Assembly: GCF_003704095.1 (NCBI RefSeq)
Contig: NW_020843829.1
Location: forward strand, 372,001-436,000
Length of the DNA: 64,000 nucleotides
Reading direction: 5' to 3'
From: Pocillopora damicornis
Lineage: Eukaryota
Position 1 is the first letter of the stretch. Each line of letters begins with the position of its first letter. Made by a program: the position numbers and the translations under genes. Shown here piece by piece: positions 39,610 through 63,725 of the stretch. The notes beneath the pieces are model-generated. The model was not told the origin of the DNA, searched no databases, and saw only the letters and a list, made by a program, of their open reading frames with translations.

Positions 39610-39825
39610 TTAACCCTTTGACTCCCATGAGTGACCAAGAAAGAATTTCTCCTTGCAATATCAATACAATATTGAACAGACAAGAGACGAGAATCGAGAA
39701 AAAATATATTAATTCAGGGGATTATTAGCTGATCCGATACCAAATTCTCCGAACTAAAGTTATACGAATTCTATGGTGGACAGTAAGGCGGATTACTAGT
39801 GAGATCGTAAGAGTGAAAAGGTCAA
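39610..39825. mobile_element. piggyBac-type MITE, subfamily B
   Basis: TTAACCCTTTGACTCCCATGAGTGACCAAG ... GAGTGAAAAGGTCAA. Confidence 0.75.
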
Positions 39826-40319: not shown

Positions 40320-41850
40320 AGAAGCGCAGGCAATTTTCAATAAAAACAGGGGAGAAGGGAACAGTTAAGGAGCTTCTCCTAGAGGATTTACCCTTAAAAC
40401 GAGTGCGGCGCGAACACGAAGAGCTGTCTCGCGCGCACGTGTTAAATTTTAGCAGCACGACAGCGTCACGTGCGCACGTGCGAGCCTGGGTGAGTTGACC
40501 TTAAGATCATGAGTCATTTTCTTTCATAAGAAGCCATCTACGGTGACTGGCTCGAAGCTATTTTGTTTTGCAAAGGCATAAGTTAAGTGTTCATACTCCT
40601 CATCCCCTATTCCTCTCGAGGAATCAGCTCCAACTGTGGGGAACTGGTTAAGTGTTGGTAAGTGCTAGTAACACGCACAGGATTTATATTACAAAGTCTC
40701 TAAAGCCGATCTTTGATGACACAGATTAATGTTTCGACGCAAATATTAGACGAGACTGTTGGTCACACAATTTTGAAAATTTTACTGATCAGAGGTAGAT
40801 ACATCAACTAGATTATATTGACTCAGAATCAGATGGTTTAAACCTGGACCGAGAATCGTTTGAGTTTTTTAACATTTTAAAACAACGAGTTGAAAGGTTC
40901 ACGCTATAGTGGGCATTTCACAACAACAGATAAAGCCATAGGCGTCATGCTTGTTTGATTCCATTTCATGCAACAATGTTTCGTTATGAGAAACAATGCA
41001 AACGGCTGCTCAATTAAAACCATTGTGATGTCGTAATATACTGAAATTACAGTGCTGGATAACATCAATTAATCGCAGACAATGGTCGACAGTAACCAGG
41101 GGGAGGAGGTAATCGGTGAAGTCCAGAGGACCCATCTCCTACCTCGTCGGAATATACCATACTACAGAGAAGCAGGCAACTGTCGGTAAACACAAGGGAG
41201 AAGGTGGTGNNNNNNNNNNTTTAGGATTAGCTTTTAGACGAGTGAAGCGCGAACGATGAGTGCCGCGCACGTGTAAATTTCGTGCTGTGCAGCAGTGTCA
41301 CGTGAGCATGTGCAAAAAGTGTCGCCTTCTAGATCTTGACCCATCTTCCTTCACAAGACCCTAGACTTTACGGCGACTACATTTAAATTATCAGTTTGTT
41401 TTGTAGACGTATCAGGCTTCCACATTCATTATAACTCCTCCTTCCTCCTCATATGGAATCAGCTAAAAAGTACTGACATTATTTGGGTAAGATCTGGGTG
41501 AAGCTAGGATGTTGAACTTTTTTGGGTGCTGTTAGGGAAGGAAGGATTTATATTTGATTGCACATGGTCATCAGCTGATGCGATCAGTCTATCTTTGCAC
41601 AGTTTGATGATTTTGACGCAGTTCCAGACTGCTCGCTACACACTCGTGGAAACTTCACTTATCGTAGGTAAATTCATGAACACGATTATAAATACTAAGA
41701 ATCAGATGGTCTGTACAGCAACCAGGAATCGTTTACATGTTTTCACACAGCAATATAACAGGTTGAACCATTTACGCGGTTCTAGCATTTAACGAAATCG
41801 GCTGAAATCACGAGGTTCGTGCATGCTTCCATTCGTACCATGCCATGACC
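40320..41850 (+). repeat. Diverged tandem duplication of a ~650-bp non-coding module (approx. 40320-40980 and 41165-41850) carrying E-boxes
   Basis: Colinear shared blocks: GCAGGCAA..GGGAGAAGG, ACGAGTG..GCGCGAAC, CGCGCACGTGT.AAATTT, GTCACGTG, GGAATCAGCT, GGATTTATATT, AGAATCAGATGGT, GAATCGTTT. CACGTG at 40436, 40467, 40475 and at 41268, 41299. Confidence 0.8.
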
Positions 41851-43534
41851 TATCGGTAAATACAATTTAATAGCCACTAATGGCGAAGTCTTTACATGTT
41901 CGCCGTGACAGGTTTAGTCACGAGCCTGGTTGTTTAACAGAAAAAAGACAAAAACTACTTCAAAACAACCACTCTCTTAGCTCGTGGTATTTTATGCAAA
42001 TTCGTATTTATATAAGGTGCTAATTTTAATTCAGGTTAATCACATGGGCTAAAATTAGTAACTCGAGAGTACGAATCACAATTGTATCTCAGTAATCAAT
42101 GAAACCTTCTGGCGGCAATGATATTGGATAACCTGGATTGAAAAACCGGAAGTTATCCCAGTGGCGCTCTTTAAACTTTTGGGTTTTTGTTTTGACTCAG
42201 AATCTTCTAGTCTCGCTATTTTTAGCTTTTTTATTATTTGGACAGGCAAACTTCTCAAAAAGTGGAAGATTTTGTGGGTCTCGACTGTTAAAAAAGGTAT
42301 ACAATTTTACTATACAACCTCTTGAACAGGGGACCTTTCCAAACTGAAAGCCTTGAAAAAGATGCAGGCTTTGGCGATGCATAATGTTGATCGCATTTCA
42401 GTATTCTCCCTGAATATGTTTGTTTAAGATTGAGTGAAGAAATGAAAAGATCTTGTGTCAGACAGGGTCGGGGTTTCAAGGCTTCGGCGGTGTACACTTC
42501 CTAGGACTTTCTTCGAGTGCTTTCCGGCTGGCGATCAAACGTTAGTATGGTAGAGAGGTTGCTCATTTTCCCGCGCAGTGAAGCCAAGCGGAAGCTCAGG
42601 GATGTGAACGCAAATCCTGTAATCGCCATAGCCTCAGAGTTCTCAACTGGCATTCTCCTTTCCAGCTGTTATATATTCCTTTGTAAATTGAGAATTCAGT
42701 TCCATATCAAAATAGCGCCTCCTCTACTTTTTTAGTGGAGAGCGTGTTGATATTGTCGGCACAAGTGTGAAGAGTGAAGAGCTAATTTCGGAGATTAATT
42801 TATGCCACATTTACCTAAAAAAGATCTTTAAAAAATTAATCAACGGTTGTTGTAATCTTGAAAAAAGCTTTTTAGCCTATTTACGCCGATGCTCCATACG
42901 TGTAAATCTAATTAGTTTCCAATGAAGTATTATTCGAGTTGGCTAAACGTAAAAACACGACAAAGTCGTCTCTGTTCAGGGATTGTTGGCTACAGCTAGA
43001 CAAAAGTCCATTGTGAGAAAGACACTGGGTTGGCCGCATTCCAGGCACTGAATGTTTTCCCATTACTGTCTATTTATATTTGATCATTTACATGCTTCAC
43101 TGCATTGTTTGCTTCTATTTCTATTTTGATAAGTATTTTTACTCAGTCGACCTTGAAAACTTGAACTTATGGAAATTTGATTTGAATTCAATGTCGTTCC
43201 AAAGTCTAACTTTATCAAATTAGGTCTGGCGCACTGATTGCACCTAGGCGGCTTTTCATGAACCAGCCCTGACTTGGGTTTCCTCTTTGTTTCTGTTTTA
43301 GACTTCATCTGGCTCCACTTTTTGAAAAAGGCTGACACTATCGAGGATTAGTTCAGCTGAAAACTTTCCTTCACGCTACATTTACGTTATAATGACAAAA
43401 ACAGGAAATTCAAACTGCAGACATTCTACCGAAATTGTTTGACGAAGACGGTCACGCGGTTAGTTACCTAAGCAGATGAACATTTAAACCCAACTCGTTT
43501 CCGCCGATAGATGTCGAGTTAAATCATCACTGAA

Positions 43535-46054
43535 ATGGAATTTTACTCAAATGCAACAACGGCTCATCAAATTAGTAACCTAAACGAGTCTTCTTCCTTA
43601 TATGGAGCGGAAATTCAAGATGAAATGCAAACTTCTGGAGGCAATTTTGGAAATGCAGTACAATCATGTCGATTAGAAGAACCAAGCTACTTGGATAGTG
43701 GCAAAAGTGGCAGAAGATTTCGTGGACCAGAGCCTTACAGAAGCACGGCTACGAACCAAACGTCATGTTCAAGTTCTACTAATAGTAATCCCTGGGAAGT
43801 CACGTTAAACCCGAGGGATATTCAAAATGGGATGCAACCGTATGCAGTGGACTTACTTTTACCAGTAAACAATTTAGTTCAGTCTCTTCCAAATGATTCT
43901 ACGGAAATTAATTCATACAACCCCATAGCTGATCCAAGGGAAACAAATCTTACGGGTATCCCATCTTACGATGTGGACATCACCATACGGTCACCTGTTA
44001 GCCATTCCTTTCATTCTCATCCAACAACCTCGACCAATATGATTCCCGATCGCCATTCAGTCGATCCGAGGGGAACGAATCCCAAGGGTATTCCAACTAA
44101 CGCTATGGACTTCTCTGGGGATAGAAATTCCTGCTATCATTTGGGTAATCCTTGGGAGAAAGATCCAAATGGAATGATGTCTTCTCATACGACTTATGAA
44201 AAAGGGAAAAAGGATCGGAACGGCATTCAATCTGGTGAAACGGAAAGTCCCGAGGTGACACATGCTACCAGGGCTGATCTCAAACGAATAAATTACGATG
44301 TTGAGGAAAGAAATTTTCATCAGGTGACACACAGAGAAAACTCGCAGTTCACTCAGCCGATACTAAGCTATCCACTTAATCAGACATGCAGCCAAGCTGG
44401 TACTTCGTCTCAAAAAACTATTAGGTTGCAAGGAGGGGCGCCATTCTACCACGCTACGTTCCAAGGAGAATTAGCCAGCCAGGTGTTCGAGAAAGGCAGT
44501 GAAGGAGGGAGCAATTTCATTTACCAAACAAGCTCCGATGGAAGGATTCGATCCAAGGATCTTCCCTTTAATTCTCAACAAACGACTGTCAATGAGAGAG
44601 GATTCACCAGGACTTGCCCTCGTTGTCACTGCGTTGTAGCGAGCCAACCACAAACGACGTCTCCTCCAACAACCCCTGGCATACAAAACACACGAACATC
44701 GGTCATCATGCTTCCTCAAAAGAGAGAGGTAGGATTGATTTAAGTATCAACTGTAGACACGCTCATTGGAAAACGTTTTAAATTCAGCATCAGGCGTTGA
44801 CAAGTTTTTATCGTCTTCAATTTGAAGCGTTATCCCGCGATCGAGTTTGACTTTTAATCAGCTAAATTGTGTCATGCTTCTTATGCTGTCAATCAACTGA
44901 ACTGTTGACCAATATTACTCGCAATTCAAGCAATGCGCATTAATTTATGATGGAAGACAAAAATGCATCAAATCAGTCACTTCACAAGGTGCGATCAAAG
45001 CTAAGGGAGGGCAAGATTCAGCCACACTTTCTGCTGTCTCCATAGCAAACAGGTGGGTGCGGGACTGGATGATGAGATGCAGGACGTGGTTCAGTAACAC
45101 CGGTCCTCTTTGAGAATCAGTTTACAGAGTGATAAGATAGTCTTCGGCCACCATATTAAAAATAACGAGCTGCAAGATTTTAATTTTTTTTTTATTTTAA
45201 TTCACAATCAGGTCGAGGAGACAAAGAAAACATCCAACCATTTTGCAGTAGGAAATCAGAAATGGCCATCACCGATAAAAAGGCCTCTGGAAAACGTAAT
45301 ACAAACTGTATTTGTATAATAGTGCATTTTATAATTGCGCTCTTTAACCCTGAATATCACTGGCTTTAGTTTTCAACTCACTAATTAAGTCTATGTTGTG
45401 CTCTTTTTGGCAAAGTTTTCATGTGAAATTCCCATAAGAAGGTCAGCCTTTATTGTGCAGCTACACACAAGTCTTTAAACTTCTTTGACACGATTTTCCC
45501 CTCCCCTCTTGGGTCTGCATTTCATGATCCCTCGTCGACAAGCGAAAACGCAGAAAGATCTTGGTCGTAAGTGCAGTTTGCATAAGGTTTTTTTTCCCAC
45601 AACTATTAGAGTAATGCCAATGTCAAATTATGTTTCTTTCATTTAGGAATCTGATCTTTCTGAAGAAGACAAAGATGATGAGGACTTACAAGAAACGTTC
45701 TTTCGAGTGAACATAGACGGCACGACTGCGAGATTCAAGCTGACAGAGGAAGATTGGGCCAAGATGCCAATTAAGTCATTTCCAAGCGGTGGCCGTCTAC
45801 TGAGCGGAGACTGGACCCGCATTTTCCTTAACAAAGTGAAGGAAAGCAACCCATGGTGCAGTTTGCGTTTCAAGAATAATCACGTGAGATCGGAAAACTC
45901 GCGTAAGATGCACTCGTCCGTGTTTTTCAGGGGAGGGGCTGAGTGCAAGTATCCAGAGTGCAGCGTTAAATTGAGATTCGTGATTAAGAAGGATTACGGG
46001 CGGCGTGTGGATGTGACCTACATCGGTAACGTCTGCCACGCTAGCTATACCTAG
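43535..46054 (+). CDS. Uncharacterised putative transcription regulator with a C-terminal WRKY-GCM1/MULE-like zinc-finger domain
   Basis: 398-codon first exon 43535-44728 (GAG|GTAGGA donor); candidate phase-0 exons 45212-45295 and 45543-45566 (RKRRKILV); last exon 45647-46054 after a TTTCTTTCATTTAG acceptor, encoding an acidic patch and WTRIF...NPWCSLRFK...SRK...FFRGGAECKYPECSVKLRF...VDVTYIGNVCH. Internal exon structure is tentative. Confidence 0.6.
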
Positions 46055-46392
46055 GCATGAGATGTAAGACTAACATCCGAGGAAACACGTTTTCTGTATC
46101 CATGTTCTCATCTTAGACTTAACAAAAATTACTCAATTCGAGTAAAGCACTTATATACTTCAATTTGTGACAAAACTCTTGGCACGCTCTAGTACTTTTT
46201 TTAACTTTTTATATCTCTCATTTATCTCTCCCTCTCTCCCATCTCAATGTTGCCTGGTGCGTGAGAAAACGCCCCGGTATAACCAAGTTATGATTAGTTT
46301 AGAGATCAGCCTTCTTATCAAACGACAAGAAGACGTGAATTTTGTAATTCAAGCACTCAGTGCAAGTGAATGAAAAACGGTACTTCACATGA

Positions 46393-46826
46393 TACAGTCG
46401 AACATGTATTCAGCGTTCACCCGCGAGGAGTGATGGGGCGACCGCTAAATTCAGGTTGAACGCTTAATACAGGTTTCACAGAATTGGGTTGTTTGAAAAA
46501 AAAAAAAGTCTTTTCATTCCATAATTAACCACTTAATGTACAAACACTCGCTCAAACTTACTACTAACATTGAATTTCGGGAGATAAACACGGAATATAT
46601 TGACCTGAGATATTATTCTTAGTTTTATTTGTGTGGTTCCACTCTAAATGACCGTTCAATTCAGGTGGAAAACAATACAAATAAGCCGTTGGGTCTCAGT
46701 TAAGGGTAACCACGACCGCATAATGATAAAGTTAATTAAGTAGAAAAGTTCGGGACTATTACAACCGAACCGATTAATACATGGTGAACGCTTAATACGG
46801 TGCCGCTTAATGCAGGTTCGACCATA
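46393..46826. mobile_element. Tc1/pogo-like MITE
   Basis: TA-CAGTCGAAC left end; GTTCGACCA-TA degenerate right end; subterminal repeats of CGCTTAATAC. Confidence 0.6.
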
Positions 46827-47727
46827 CTCTCAATACTTAAAGTACTGAGGCTTCGAATCTGTACTATTCACTCGCAGTTTACACACCTTACATCAAGCAT
46901 TTACATTTAGATATTGTGAAAAGTCTAACTCATCTTTCTCAATCCCTGTATTTCCAGGAGAGAAAAACCAAAATATCGTCGTTTTTCTGTAATAAATTTC
47001 TCTTTTACAAAATAAATCCTGAAATTCGACTTATCTTGATGAAAATACGAGAAAGAAAAGTCTTTTACCTTGTCAAAGCGCGCATCAGTGGTTTAAAGAT
47101 CTATTACGTACCTTATACGTTTCTGTATTAAGACCCCAGCCCTATATACTCCGTAACCGTCTGTCAACATGCGCAGCTCTTCTCTAGGTTGATCATGATG
47201 TGGCTCGAAACTGACCTGATATACTTTGAACTTCCGAAGTGGCTTATACGACTAGCTCTGCCGCATTTGAAGTTTTCTTTTTAAATAAACCAATTGGAAG
47301 GTTTCCTTGCTAGGATATGGTTTATATTGTAGCAAGGAGCTGTCACGCTTTTATTACGTTGCCATACGTAGCCTCTCGAGAGGTTCTCGTGATGCAGCTT
47401 ACCATCCGAACCATACTGGACAAAAGCGCTTGACTTCCCGACTGAGCAACCAAGGATAGCATTGATTACGTAAGAGCCCGATAATTCTGATGACTTCTCT
47501 TGCGAGGCCTTTCTTGTGATCCTTTCTAAGACCTCTTCTAAATAATTTAAAACAACCTTTTAAACTTCTTCTTTTATTCTAGACTTTATTCTATTTTCTT
47601 CTTTGTTCCCTCTTCAACTTCAAGTCAGTTCTCAAAAGTCTGAAGCACAGAAGCTCCTCCTGGACACAAAGCGGACCTATGCCATGTTTTACTTAAAGAG
47701 GAAGTCTGAGTACAAGTTTAATTCAAG

Positions 47728-50700
47728 ATGGAGTTTGAGGAGTTGAGAGTTGAAATTCCTGCTGATGATAGCGATAAAGAGGAGAAAGATTTACCATTTT
47801 ACTTTGTAAGTATGAAGGATATTTAGTAATTTAACTATAATTATTATCTATAAAAACATGTAATTATTTTTTTCCATGAATTTTGCACGTATAGGAAAGA
47901 AGATATGAAAATAAGTCTGGGTGTTTCGTGACAGGATTTGATGTAACTTCGAAGGTACTCATATCGTTGTAAAGTGTTTAAATTATAATTTCAGTCGAAG
48001 TGGAACTGATTTCCTGTTACCTTGTAACTTGAAATGTTTGGATTTATTCCTATTAAACTCCAAGAAGTTTTGATCAACCAAGAATTTAGCTACAGTACCA
48101 TGGCCTCAAGTTACTTCAACGAAATTCGTTAAATTTAATCCATGTGACATTTAGCATTCGACATTTCTGATCTCCCTAGATTTGAAAGCCAGCCACTGAA
48201 TATCTATTTCTTAAAATTCTCTTTAAAAAAATTGGCTATTTTTCTATTTTTCTTGGACCTTTTTTCCGAGCCCAATGGTAATTTTATTTATATATCACAT
48301 GCCTTCAAATACAGACATACACCTCACAATTTATAATACGAAAGTAAACGTTATGTGATATACAGGGGAAAGGTTCCTTACATCTGGTGTCATTTGTGGT
48401 GGATATAGGCTGCAAAATCTCCTGTTGCTTGCATTAAAACTTCAGGAGTTATCAACCACCTCTTTGGGTGGTAGACAGTGCCATTGTGTAGGCTTGCGTC
48501 AAAGATTGTAATGTCTGGGTGTGCACCCTGGCAAGGTCTTTTTTTGTGTTTTGTTTTTAAGAAAGATTCTTAACTCAAATGGTGCTTCTCTCAACCATGA
48601 TGGTGAACAAAATGTGTACCAGTTAGTTGAAAACTATATGGAATATGCTGAGTAAAGCAACCAACCTTCTATCTATTTGCAGTTACTGTCAGTAGCAATA
48701 CTTTAAATTTTTCAGCTCTCATTTCCATCATACAAATGTTATTCTCTTTGGTTCACAGGAAGCACAGGAGAGGAAAGAAAGAAGGGCAAAAAGATTTGGC
48801 CTTCAAGCAAAACAGAAAGACACAGAAAAGGATGACAGTCATTCTGAGGATGACCCAGATACAGTGTAGGTGTATTAACTCAGAGAAGTATATGATTCTT
48901 AATCCTTTAACTCTGATAAGTGACCAAGGCAGGATTTCTCCTTACAATATCAATACAGTATCTGAAGGAGACAAGCACTGAGAATTAAGAAAAATGTCAA
49001 TTAGGGGATTAGTAGTTTATCCAGTATCAAATTCTTAGAACAAACATTATAGGAATTGTTTGGCAGAGAGTAAGGAGAATTTCTGATGAGATCTAGGGGT
49101 GAACCAGTTAAGTCTCCTTTCCTACGGTCATTAAGGCTCTTTATACACTAAACTCTCCCCTTCTCCACCTGTCCATTCTGTCTTTTTACAATTGTTTTGG
49201 GGGTAGGGTTAGTGGAGGGGAGAGAATGAGAGAGGGGGGAGGGGGAAATAGTTGTATGAAAAGCATAAATTACAGCTGCTGTGCACCACTTCTTGCATGT
49301 GCCTTTTCACTTTCAGATTTTTTGTTATATTTATTGGGTTCTTCATGTAGTAACCTCTTACTTAACGGTACTTCATTTTTTTTTTTTAGAAAGTTTTATG
49401 CTTATTTGTTATTGGCTTTTTTTTTTGTTTTTTTTCAGACTGCCATCTGTTGATCCCAAGGAGTTGCCTGCCATTACTGATGGTAAATTGACCCTTTAAC
49501 CCTTAAGAGTGACTGGCCTCTAATTTCTCCTTACTATATCACCCTGAATCAAACCTTTAAGTCAGGAGAATAAAGGAGTTGATCACAGACTAAAGAAGCT
49601 CTTGATTGTTAGGCAAATTCTCCATGTTGGCATCTTAGGAAATGTTTAGAGAACAGTATGGAGAATATACATACTGATGTTAGGGTGTAAAGGGTTAAAC
49701 TTGTTTCTTCATAGTCCTTTTTTTTATCAACAAACCAGTAGGATCTTTCTCCCCATATCAATTGCCCATGAAGTATTTAACATTAAAAAAGTCTGAACTT
49801 TTTCCAGAATTAATAACATGTATTGATATCTCAGTAGTACTTGGTAGTATTCTTTTGAATAGAGTGCTTTTTGATAGAGTATCTTAATCCTAACCTAAGG
49901 TCTAGACTTGACAAAGGTCCAGTTATGAAGGAAATAGTGGGAACCTGTGTGACTACATGAAAACAGCCATAAGCATGGAGACTAAAGCATGGTTGAAGGA
50001 TCAGGAGTCATTTGCTCACATTGGTCACAAAAAAAGCAAATCGATTAATATATATTCCTTTCAGCATTCATGTGAAAGGTGCTTTTATTTATTGCTAAGG
50101 GTCTATTTATTATGCAAATCATACATCATGTTGTACACTTGACACTGGCTCTTTGTTTGAAGGTGAGACCAGATCAGATGCCATTCTTATTCATGGCGTG
50201 AACGAGATGAGCACAGAGGATGTGTTTGCATATTTCAGAGACTTTGCCCCTGGGTCTGTAGAATGGATTGATGATTCTTCATGTAAGTCCTTGATCTCAG
50301 TAATCTAACAAATGACAGGGATTAATGGATGAGAATTATGTAGGCTGAGGTTTGGATTATTTGCTGAAGCTAGACACTGATGCAAATAACACAACCATAG
50401 CTTTTCTATTGTTCTAAGAGGAAAGTGTTGTCTACTCTACACTGCCAGAGCTGTTAGTAAGAGTAAGCAGTCAGCCAAAACTGCCGGCATATCTGTTACC
50501 TTTAGCCAGCTACTTTCACCTCATTTTTCAAACAAACCATACAATTTTTGAAATACCACTGAAGAAATTTTTAGGATAGCCATTTCCCAATTCTTAAGTG
50601 AAATTATATGGATGTGATTTACTTTAAACAGTTTTAAAAATGTTAGTTGGTCAGTTCCACCTTGCTGGAAGGTTTGTGAAAAATTCCTGGAATGCTTGGA

Positions 50701-57000: not shown

Positions 57001-57494
57001 AATACTGAATAAGTTCCCTCTTGGCTTGTTATGAAATCTCTTCAAGTATCAAAAACTAAAGATTGTTCGTTTGTTCTGAGATTGTCATCCCAATCTATAA
57101 TTTTTGAAACGAGATATTTCTCTAAGTGCGAGATCACTCAAATCACCTTAATGCGAAACTCTTCTTTATTTACACCATTTGCGAAATTTTAACAATATTA
57201 TAGGTCCCAACAAAACTATACTTTTAGTTCCGAGAAGCTGATCCGTCTTCCCGAGTCCTCAGTAACCTGTTAAATTTTTCACCTCTCTCTATGAGAGACT
57301 GGAACGACCGAAGTACTGTCAAACGCTGTTGCATGATGGGACGACCGGCTTCCGCCATCTTGATCACCAACGTCAAAGCAACGTTGTTGAAAACGGAAAT
57401 TCAGTGGGGAATCTACTTCAGAGTGAGCTAAGATCTTCCCTTCATCGTTATTTGGATTTTGATACTCAAGAAAGGTCCAAGAACAGCTTTCAAA

Positions 57495-57923
57495 ATGTCT
57501 TACATGCTTCAGCATCTTAAAAATGGTTGGCAAGTTGATCAGGCAATCATGTCGGAAGAAGATCGAGTTGTGGTTATTCGATTTGGTCACGATTGGGATC
57601 CGACATGCATGAAAATGGACGAAGTATTGTACACCATTGCGGATAAAGTGAAGAACTTTGCGGTGATCTACTTAGTGGATATTACAGAGTGTCCGGATTT
57701 TAACAAAATGTATGAATTGTACGACCCCTGCACGACAATGTTCTTCTACCGAAACAAACACATCATGATTGATTTGGGCACAGGAAACAACAATAAGATC
57801 AACTGGGCTTTGGAAGATAAACAAGAAATGGTTGATATTGTCGAGACTGTTTATCGTGGAGCGCGGAAAGGCCGAGGTTTGGTTGTTTCACCCAAGGATT
57901 ATTCCACCAAGTATCGTTATTAG
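57495..57923 (+). CDS. TXNL4A: U5 snRNP thioredoxin-like protein Dim1 (142 aa), intronless
   Basis: MSYMLQHLKNGWQVDQAIMSEEDRVVVIRFGHDWDPTCMKMDEVLY...GRGLVVSPKDYSTKYRY*, very close to the canonical Dim1 sequence, in a single uninterrupted ORF. Confidence 0.98.
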   Translation: MSYMLQHLKNGWQVDQAIMSEEDRVVVIRFGHDWDPTCMKMDEVLYTIADKVKNFAVIYLVDITECPDFNKMYELYDPCTTMFFYRNKHIMIDLGTGNNNKINWALEDKQEMVDIVETVYRGARKGRGLVVSPKDYSTKYRY

Positions 57924-62834: not shown

Positions 62835-62993
62835 CCGATAAGCTGAATATAAATCGAGCGGATTTGCATTATAGTACAAAACAGTTTGCCAAGTCACTTT
62901 GACGTTCCTCCTGGCAGCGGAAAACAATTGAACGTTCATGCAAATTCGGTTCAGTTCGTTTACGCAAAACATTACGTCTGTTCTTCTCTTGTC

Positions 62994-63725
62994 ATGTGCG
63001 AGGTCTTATTGATGCGTGAAAATTATGGCGGTCGGCTGGCATTGAAGCAAATGAAGATCCCACCAGAAATCGTTTACTCTTTGGATATGAATGGATATGA
63101 AATTGGTGAAGGAAATTTTCACGGTGATAAAGATGTGAATGGAGAGGATTGTGACGGATTTGAGCGGGATTTCCATTGTAATGCGTCAGACGAAGATGGA
63201 GAGATTTTCGCCGGAGACGATGACGGAGCGGATGATGTCTATCGGCAGTTAGCGCAAAAGGAAAAGGACCTTCTCTTGGCTGCAGAGCTTGGGAAAGCTT
63301 TGTTGGAGAAGAACGAAGAGCTCAGCCAGAAGTATGAATTATTACAGGAGGAATATTCTCAAGCAGTCGAAGTACGTTTTTGTTGTTTTTTGTTGCTAGA
63401 TCCGCTTTTAGTTTTACACGCGCGAATGAATTTGTTGAGAGCAGGTTGCGGTAAGTTCGCGTTCGATTTTTGTCATCACGGAATTTTAACCTCTGAGTTT
63501 TTTTCTTAGGCACTGGAACAAGATAAATACGAGCTTAAACTCAAAGTGGAACGTTTGCAAAACGGGAGCGATTCGAGAGTTCATGAACTACAAGCAGATT
63601 TGAGAACGCTGCGAAATGAATTGAAAACACTCCAGTCCGACACGAACAACGACAAACAAAACAAGAGAGAAACGTTCGCTGGTCTCACGGAAGAGAATGA
63701 ACAACTTCATCTGGATCTACAAAAG
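62994..63725 (+). CDS. BICDL1: BICD-family-like cargo adaptor (BICDR/CCDC64), 5' part; gene continues beyond the window
   Basis: Exon 1 ends at 63371 (start ATG uncertain: 62994 or downstream); exon 2 is 63510-63725. QKEKDLLLAAELGKALLEKNEEL (CC1-box AAxxG)...ALEQDKYELK...SRVHELQADLRTLRNEL coiled coil. Confidence 0.85.

Follow-up and report, generated by a model that had tools for sequence, protein, structure and literature searches.

The DNA-binding domains of transposases are a known source of transcription factors, a route represented by the WRKY, GCM, FLYWCH, FAR1 and Aft families. The DNA-binding domains of Aft2, WRKY, GCM, FLYWCH and the transposases of Mutator-like elements (MULEs) have been united in the WRKY-GCM1 superfamily (Babu et al. 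2006, PMC1702500). An N-terminal WRKY-GCM1 domain is the standard DNA-binding module of MULE transposases, and its repeated recruitment by hosts has been documented, the host factors derived from it including FAR1/FHY3 in plants and Rcs1/Aft1/Aft2 in fungi. FLYWCH and GCM are animal transcription-factor domains that are also thought to be transposon-derived, and a helix before the first strand has been described for the MULE-associated families (PMC1702500). Here we describe a gene of the coral Pocillopora damicornis that fits this route. It lies on the plus strand of a 64-kb stretch of the genome (GCF_003704095.1, NW_020843829.1, 372,001-436,000), which is called the window below and in whose coordinates all positions are given, and its coding sequence extends from 43535 to 46054. 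We consider it likely that this is a host gene whose terminal domain was captured long ago from a Mutator-like transposase and whose product acts as a DNA-binding transcription regulator.

The gene is real and expressed. RNA contigs from four runs of four studies, labeled as coral or marine metatranscriptomes, were aligned to positions 42000-47500 of the window. A preliminary description of the locus had proposed a 398-codon exon rich in Ser, Thr, Pro and Asn that is spliced in frame, through a 24-nt microexon, to a compact C-terminal domain, and both ends of this model were confirmed. The open reading frame (ORF) at 43535-44743 runs for 398 codons to a GT donor at 44729, beyond which four further codons are open before the stop. 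The corresponding exon 2 (43302-44728), covered by contigs from 43299/43300 to 44726 in the four runs, consists of 5' untranslated region (UTR) to 43534 and, from the ATG at 43535, of the 398 codons. The splice joints 44728>45212 and 45295>45647, both of the GT..AG type, were present in all four runs and define an exon 3 of 84 nt (45212-45295) with 28 codons, VEETKKTSNHFAVGNQKWPSPIKRPLEN. All three coding exons are spanned by single RNA contigs of 2948 nt (X1) and 3046 nt (X9). The last exon (45647-46054) starts with an acidic patch, ESDLSEEDKDDEDLQE (45647-45694), which has 10 Asp/Glu and 1 Lys among its 16 residues and is also present in all three paralogues described below. It continues with the WRKY-GCM1-type zinc domain (45695-46054, residues 17-135 of the exon translation), closed by a TAG stop at 46052-46054. 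This exon carries all of the C-terminal motifs that had been quoted (WTRIF, NPWC, FK, SRK, FFRGGAEC-x4-C and VTYIGNVCH), and the ORF stops after the domain, as described. The predicted protein has 398 + 28 + 135 = 561 residues; in the searches its exons were used one at a time, and the database orthologues P0001 and P0212 represented the full length. Loose contig ends (119-178 letters; X1, X4, X9) before 43299/43300 match positions 41642-41665, and there is therefore an untranslated first exon at about 41487-41667, with a donor GT at 41668, that is spliced to 43302; its 5' end, read from the RNA contig ends, is approximate, and the transcription start may be further upstream. At the other end, the contigs reach 46961-46976, so that the 3' UTR (46055-46976) is at least 900 nt long; AATAAA occurs at 46991 and 47012.

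The microexon itself did not hold. The 24-nt candidate (RKRRKILV, 45543-45566) lies inside intron 3, outside the transcript. Its AG/GTAAGT borders look good, yet no joint was found at either border in the four RNA runs: the junction 44728/45212 was seen as proposed, and 45295/45543 and 45566/45647 occurred in no run, the joint 45295>45647 being used instead. The microexon is also absent from two transcript-derived orthologues of other corals, P0003 (a fragment of 316 aa) and P0212 (563 aa), both of them collinear with exon 2, exon 3 and the last exon and with nothing between residues 428 and 429. Because the microexon is unused in transcripts, the nuclear localization signal (NLS) that had been proposed for the protein falls. 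Low-depth contigs (X2, X4; depth about 5; window 44701-45052) read through the exon-2 donor into the intron and are then spliced from about 45050-45052 to the acceptor of exon 3 or of the last exon (joints 45209, 45645). Translation of such transcripts would end at the TAA at 44741-44743, yielding a protein of 402 residues that has no zinc domain. The transcripts may represent unspliced precursors or else a minor isoform.

A Pfam search of both coding pieces returned nothing except a sub-threshold SGS match, and the fold of the terminal domain was addressed with structure prediction and profile comparison. The AlphaFold2 model of the last-exon domain, calculated from an input alignment of 67 mostly short members, has a predicted local distance difference test (pLDDT) score of 91.6 and a predicted template modeling score of 0.80. 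Over residues 18-52 it has two short hairpins and one short helix, followed by a second helix (56-67) and strands at 73-80, 94-100, 108-113, 120-126 and 129-132. The four-stranded antiparallel beta-sheet core of the WRKY-GCM1 superfamily is present in the model, with modest scores, and helix 56-67 directly precedes strand 73-80, matching the feature described for the MULE-associated families. Compared with all PDB sequences, the family profile gave seven matches, six of which are WRKY domains (best E of 0.016). Foldseek retrieved WRKY18, WRKY1 and RRS1-WRKY at probabilities of 0.84-0.95 (up to 0.95 for WRKY18) and an E of about 0.25. A structural alignment independent of Foldseek, run over 48161 chains, ranked Aft2-DNA first (Z of 5.5 over 74 residues) and WRKY33 second (Z of 5.1), with WRKY1 and another WRKY at 4.4-4.5; according to the note of the aligner, a Z under 8 can reflect merely a common arrangement. 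The language-model neighbors that have a Pfam name are FAR1, GCM, FLYWCH, AFT, ZSWIM3_N and ALS2CR8, which we treated as a lead only. On the combined weight of these modest results, no single score being strong, we accept the predicted terminal domain as a WRKY-GCM1-type fold, in agreement with what had been proposed.

The putative metal ligands can be read from the alignment of 154 members. Near-invariant Cys and His residues are C71 (149/150), C100 (149/149), C105 (139/147) and H131 (135/139). C100-x4-C105 sits between strands 94-100 and 108-113, and the profile alignment to WRKY places this Cys-x4-Cys on the WRKY Cys pair and H131 on the first WRKY His. C130, which adjoins H131, occurs in only 34 members, and nothing is conserved after H131. 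From its conservation, we infer that C71, located just before strand 1, may supply the fourth metal ligand in place of the missing one. F75-K76 in strand 1 and S85-R86-K87 in the next loop are near-invariant as well. The domain has about 115 residues and a net basic composition, with 22 Lys/Arg and 11 Asp/Glu. By analogy with WRKY and Aft2, DNA would be read by this basic beta-sheet domain through strand 1 (SLRFKNNHVR) and the SRK loop, and the protein is probably a sequence-specific DNA-binding transcription regulator.

The origin of the domain is indicated by its homologues. A domain profile made from the four coral copies was compared with 1.84 billion representative proteins (E up to 1e-3) and gave 212 matches. 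Among the best 150 of these, at least 35 are long proteins that have the domain at the N terminus and a conserved core downstream of it, so that the transposase relation suggested in the preliminary description is borne out: the coral domain is homologous to the N terminus of long DDE/CxxH proteins with a transposase fold. In a 30-protein alignment of the long homologues, the core contains D298 (26/28), D373 (23/25) and E595 (21/23), and after the second Asp follows a CxxH, with C419 in 25/25 and H422 in 23/25. This D-D-CxxH-E arrangement is typical of Mutator-like elements. The AlphaFold2 model of one long homologue, P0027, has a pLDDT above 90 for most of residues 50-640, and nearly all of its best Foldseek matches are DDE transposases, with ISCth4 first and P element, Hermes, Mos1 and RAG1 following (E of 1.5e-3 and weaker). 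ISCth4 is an IS256-family element, and IS256 elements are the bacterial kin of Mutator. The predicted core folds like IS256, P-element and hAT transposases. When the long-homologue family was aligned with four MULE frames of the coral genome by hhalign, the probability was 87% (E of 4e-6, 105 columns), and the language-model neighbors of the long homologues are MULE clusters. A profile of the long homologues found nothing meaningful among the PDB sequences. Extra domains among the 30 long homologues are USP (UCH) in 6, a PHD finger in 5 and an Ulp1 protease in 2, and the PHD finger has been described as a mark of the Rehavkus group (PMC6446971).

These results support a Mutator-like DDE transposase group outside the Pfam models as the source of the domain. 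We name the source Mutator-like and do not file it as MULE, because the Pfam MULE family was unmatched and ends and target duplications were not found. The coral gene itself has no transposase catalytic core, its ORF stopping 4 residues after H131, and a search around the gene found no flanking inverted repeats; both points had been made before. On L016, the 10-kb metagenomic contig that carries the P0027 ORF, satellite repeats (period of 134 nt, sub-period of 37) form an array at 1-2880 that is at least 2.9 kb long, and a second, 69/137-nt array lies at 4291-5323, upstream of the ORF. These arrays recall the subterminal repeats of Foldback and Rehavkus-type elements.

The gene had been considered an orphan and a lineage-specific recent insertion, and neither description can be maintained. 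The last exon has three paralogues in the genome (assembly searched, 234 Mb in 4393 contigs), with 73-76% identity, intact frames and an AG at the same frame point before each. By the 67-sequence domain profile, there are only four copies of the domain in the 234 Mb, all of them terminal exons and none transposase-linked. Two of the paralogues (L008 and L009, at about 197 kb and 303 kb of contig C2785) are 106 kb apart in the same orientation, suggesting local duplication. For the N-terminal exon, a direct search of the genome found no paralogue; the three paralogues have large upstream exons that close in the manner of exon 2 of the window gene, with a Cys cluster and, 20-25 residues on, a short motif. 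Relatives were found in six other coral genera and in two sea anemones, the named ones coming from the corals Montipora foliosa, M. capricornis, Acropora muricata, A. cervicornis, Stylophora pistillata, Oculina patagonica and Orbicella faveolata and from the sea anemones Nematostella vectensis and Exaiptasia diaphana. Their database names read 'uncharacterized' or 'hypothetical' throughout, and no precomputed Pfam domain is assigned to any of them.

Purifying selection on the domain is strong. The identity of the window gene to P0212 is 63% in the N-terminal region, where the start MEFY is kept, 71% in exon 3 (against residues 401-428 of P0212) and 93% in the domain. In the comparison with the orthologous transcript L020 (synonymous divergence dS of about 0.33-0.35), the ratio of nonsynonymous to synonymous substitution rates (dN/dS) is 0.063 for the last exon, 0.48 for the last 153 codons of exon 2 and 0.58 for exon 3. 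Among the three closer paralogues, the dN/dS of the domain exon is 0.09-0.12; in comparisons of these paralogues with the window gene, synonymous sites have reached saturation. The non-neutral evolution expected of a domesticated factor is thus seen in the domain. It might be argued from the lack of a Pfam match and from the 'uncharacterized' or 'hypothetical' names of all named relatives that the locus is the decaying remnant of a transposon or an artefact of annotation, transcribed without function. However, splicing is consistent in four studies, the frames are intact in all four genome copies, the domain has a dN/dS of 0.06 and collinear orthologues exist in other corals; the evidence from selection and expression refutes this explanation.

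A tree built from 137 domain sequences groups the coral copies in a single short-branched clade (Shimodaira-Hasegawa-like approximate likelihood ratio test, SH-aLRT, of 99), which is surrounded by the anemone copies and one transposase, P0047 (SH-aLRT of 91). The rest of the tree consists of long-branched transposase-linked copies. The four-member family is present in both major coral clades and in anemones, and so the capture is old; the simplest reading of this distribution would be one capture before the coral-anemone split, followed by duplication. The reverse direction has also to be considered, in which an old cnidarian or eukaryotic host domain was captured by a transposon lineage. It would be compatible with the tree being unrooted and with most of the transposase-type proteins coming from metagenomic contigs. 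However, the transposase-linked copies are long-branched over the whole tree, in which the host copies make up a single shallow clade, and WRKY-GCM1 is a standard MULE module for which repeated host recruitment is documented (PMC1702500). We regard a passage from host to transposon as improbable. A protein of the hydrozoan Clytia hemisphaerica, P0034 (XP_066931752.1, 'gametocyte surface protein P230-like, partial'), has the domain at its C terminus after a long acidic repeat region, is without the RxSVI motif considered below and groups in the tree with P0148, a transposase; it may stem from an independent capture or be a piece of a transposon.

The N-terminal region of about 400 residues is fast-evolving and of low complexity (12% Ser, 10% Thr, 8% Asn, 7.5% Pro) and is loosely constrained and probably disordered. 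In an alignment of 9 rows, its identity between the window gene and its paralogues is 14-23%. All three paralogues start with MYSL-x-D-I/M; the window gene starts with MEFYSN and is without the MYSL motif. A Cys cluster, C-P-R-C-H-C (44624-44641), recognized in the N-terminal alignment, has the counterparts CNCCCH, CNCSCH or CCHCPCH in the paralogues. It is followed, after about 20-25 residues, by the short linear motif R-T-S-V-I-M-L-P (44693-44716, with RTSVI at 44693-44707). The family consensus of this motif, R-x-S-V-I-M-V/L-P, is the single long conserved block of the N-terminal region; it was found in 9/9 family members compared, and of the eleven columns with identity in 7/9 rows or more, seven fall within it. 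The variants are RPSVIMVP in the three paralogues, RPGVIMVP in one Montipora paralogue and RESVIMVP in Nematostella, and the Arg, Val and Ile are invariant across the cnidarian members compared.

This motif names a candidate partner. The RING of IRF2BP2 binds RxSVI peptides of IRF2, VGLL4 and ZBTB16, as established by isothermal titration calorimetry, crystal structures and mutagenesis (Wang et al. 2024, PMC11608337). Arg1, Val4 and Ile5 of the ligand are essential, and the motif may relax to RxxVI (PMC11608337). By the count of the same paper, RxSVI is present in more than 1000 human proteins (PMC11608337), and because of this a match to RxSVI alone is weak evidence. The coral genome has one IRF2BP gene, an intronless ORF of 606 codons (L019 1989-3809, minus strand, contig C1129), whose product carries an N-terminal IRF-2BP1_2 zinc finger (E of 6e-25) and, at the C terminus, a RING with about 80% identity to the crystallized human IRF2BP2 RING (E of 1e-38). 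The motif of the coral gene fits the RxSVI/RxxVI ligand and can be regarded as a candidate docking site whose partner gene is conserved in the coral, the motif peptide NTRTSVIMLPQK being the candidate ligand for the coral IRF2BP RING. A complex prediction of this RING with zinc and a 40-residue motif segment gave scores of 0.45, 0.02 and 0.02 and was counted neither way. We tentatively suggest that the protein might repress transcription by docking IRF2BP through RxSVI, a possibility that we put forward with clear reserve.

A different interpretation of the same features is that the domain is now a protein- or RNA-binding module, not a DNA-binding one, and that V-I-M-V is a SUMO-interaction motif and not an IRF2BP ligand. 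V-I-M-V fits the hydrophobic core of such a motif, the acidic patch lies close downstream, some of the related transposases carry Ulp1 or USP proteases, and the complex prediction gave RING binding no support, which is itself not evidence against binding. Yet the domain is net basic and has F-K and S-R-K where, positioned by analogy, WRKY and Aft2 contact DNA. Moreover, the invariant Arg1 of the motif is needed for IRF2BP2 binding (PMC11608337) and is no feature of SUMO-interaction motifs. We therefore hold this interpretation to be unlikely.

It could also be proposed that the gene is a transposon-control factor, that is, a domain-only protein that binds the ends of cognate Mutator-like elements and blocks or silences them instead of regulating host genes. 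The domain is homologous to the DNA-binding end of transposases, and a corepressor-recruiting motif would suit silencing. However, no transposase-linked copy of the domain was found in the genome even by profile, leaving no evident target, and the strong purifying selection seen in distant coral clades and in anemones speaks for a stable role in the host. We give such a function a low probability.

Several observations weigh against a host regulator with a domain captured from a Mutator-like transposase. The matches to WRKY-GCM1 structures and profiles are individually weak (E of 0.016-0.4, Z of 4.4-5.5), and the HxH/HxC dyad of WRKY is reduced to one His, the second C-terminal ligand being missing. 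No NLS is evident in the window copy, in which the microexon is not spliced in and the basic tail of the paralogues (for example, KKMKRARR) is lacking. Pfam transposase families including MULE (PF10551) and Transposase_mut matched 0/30 of the long homologues at E up to 1, and a search of the single contig examined (L016) gave no convincing terminal inverted repeats on either side of the P0027 ORF. The direction from transposon to host is only inferred, because the root of the tree is arbitrary. Finally, the fit of V-I-M-V to a SUMO-interaction motif competes with the reading of the same residues as an IRF2BP ligand.

The history and mechanism that we propose would be as follows. In the coral-anemone ancestor, a transposase's DNA-binding domain would have been taken up as a terminal exon, alone and with none of the transposase core, and the gene would then have been duplicated. 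The domain would bind DNA, and the N-terminal motif would serve to attract a partner, the likeliest being the IRF2BP corepressor, bound via its RING. The family might thus be a private coral and sea-anemone group of repressors that combines a captured Mutator-like domain (Cys...Cys-x4-Cys...His) with an IRF2BP-recruiting RxSVI motif, a conjecture that we consider possible but far from likely. If it is true, RxSVI-IRF2BP docking, known from three mammalian factors, predates the cnidarian-bilaterian split, and new regulators could join this docking simply by adding a captured DNA-binding exon. What is new with respect to the known route is a coral and anemone family under selection that has no Pfam model and is 'uncharacterized' in the databases, a source group of Mutator-like transposases that likewise has no Pfam model, and a conserved short motif that names IRF2BP as a concrete candidate partner. 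The domain is a ligand variant belonging to a cnidarian family not covered by Pfam, and no member is named in the databases searched. Cnidarian-specific regulators are relevant to coral development, symbiosis and stress biology, and the Nematostella members LOC125556674 and LOC116606246 make the family experimentally accessible.

Other features of the window were also noted. A 50-nt module rich in CACGTG-type E-boxes occurs in two copies, at 40432-40481 and 41264-41313, with 74% identity; the second copy is about 170-220 nt upstream of the 5' exon and so lies in the likely promoter. A dispersed 63-nt repeat at 39610-39672, 48899-48961 and 49488-49550 (84% and 62% identity of the latter two to the first copy) flanks the gene on both sides in direct orientation, and is probably a short interspersed element and not transposon ends. 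Further downstream, an intronless ORF at 57459-57923 (plus strand) encodes a DIM1/TXNL4A-type spliceosomal thioredoxin-like protein (Pfam DIM1, E of 6e-69), and an exon at 62886-63509 (plus strand) has a weak HAP1_N match of the TRAK/Milton type (E of 2e-7, below the Pfam cut-off).

According to the features described above, the coral domain can be compared with the WRKY-GCM1 superfamily's known members. With plant WRKY domains, it shares the Cys-x4-Cys between strands 2 and 3 and the His after the last strand, which align, as well as the fold, at a Z of 4.4-5.1. The sequence PFFRGxAxC...C.VK..F......V.VTY.G..H of the coral family parallels PRSYYRC..pgC.VKK.V.......l.tTYeG.H.H of WRKY. However, strand 1 of the coral domain is SLRFKNNHVR, in which F-K is conserved, and has no WRKYGQK; there is no Pfam WRKY match and no second His, and the family is an animal one linked to transposases. 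FLYWCH and GCM belong to the same superfamily by fold. The coral domain differs from FLYWCH in having A-E-C, with no Trp two residues before the first Cys, and did not match PF04500 at E up to 10. It differs from GCM in its Cys spacer of 4 and in having no zinc-ribbon insert, and it has no Pfam GCM match.

The MULE domains and their host derivatives, FAR1/FHY3 and Rcs1/Aft1/Aft2, resemble the coral domain in being beta-sheet zinc domains with a helix before the first strand, and Aft2-DNA is its best structural match. In addition, the homologues of the coral domain are N-terminal on DDE and CxxH transposases, and the host gene keeps the domain alone. The differences are that the coral domain does not match Pfam FAR1, AFT, MULE or SWIM, that it is C-terminal in the host protein, that one C-terminal His is conserved together with a near-invariant Cys before strand 1, and that its core comes after a beta-beta-alpha-beta-beta extension about 50 residues long. 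On the side of the source, the long homologues resemble Rehavkus, Phantom and Foldback-type relatives of MULEs in their DDE and CxxH core, in the PHD finger of 5/30, as in Rehavkus, and in the 134-nt satellite array beside the ORF on one contig. They differ in having USP and Ulp1 fusions and no Pfam MULE match.

The putative docking motif can in turn be compared with those of IRF2, VGLL4 and ZBTB16, the RxSVI partners of IRF2BP2. The coral motif, a candidate ligand, differs from them in being extended (SVIM-V/L-P). As in the mammalian partners, the essential Arg, Val and Ile are kept, and the motif lies in a probably disordered region of a putative DNA-binding protein.

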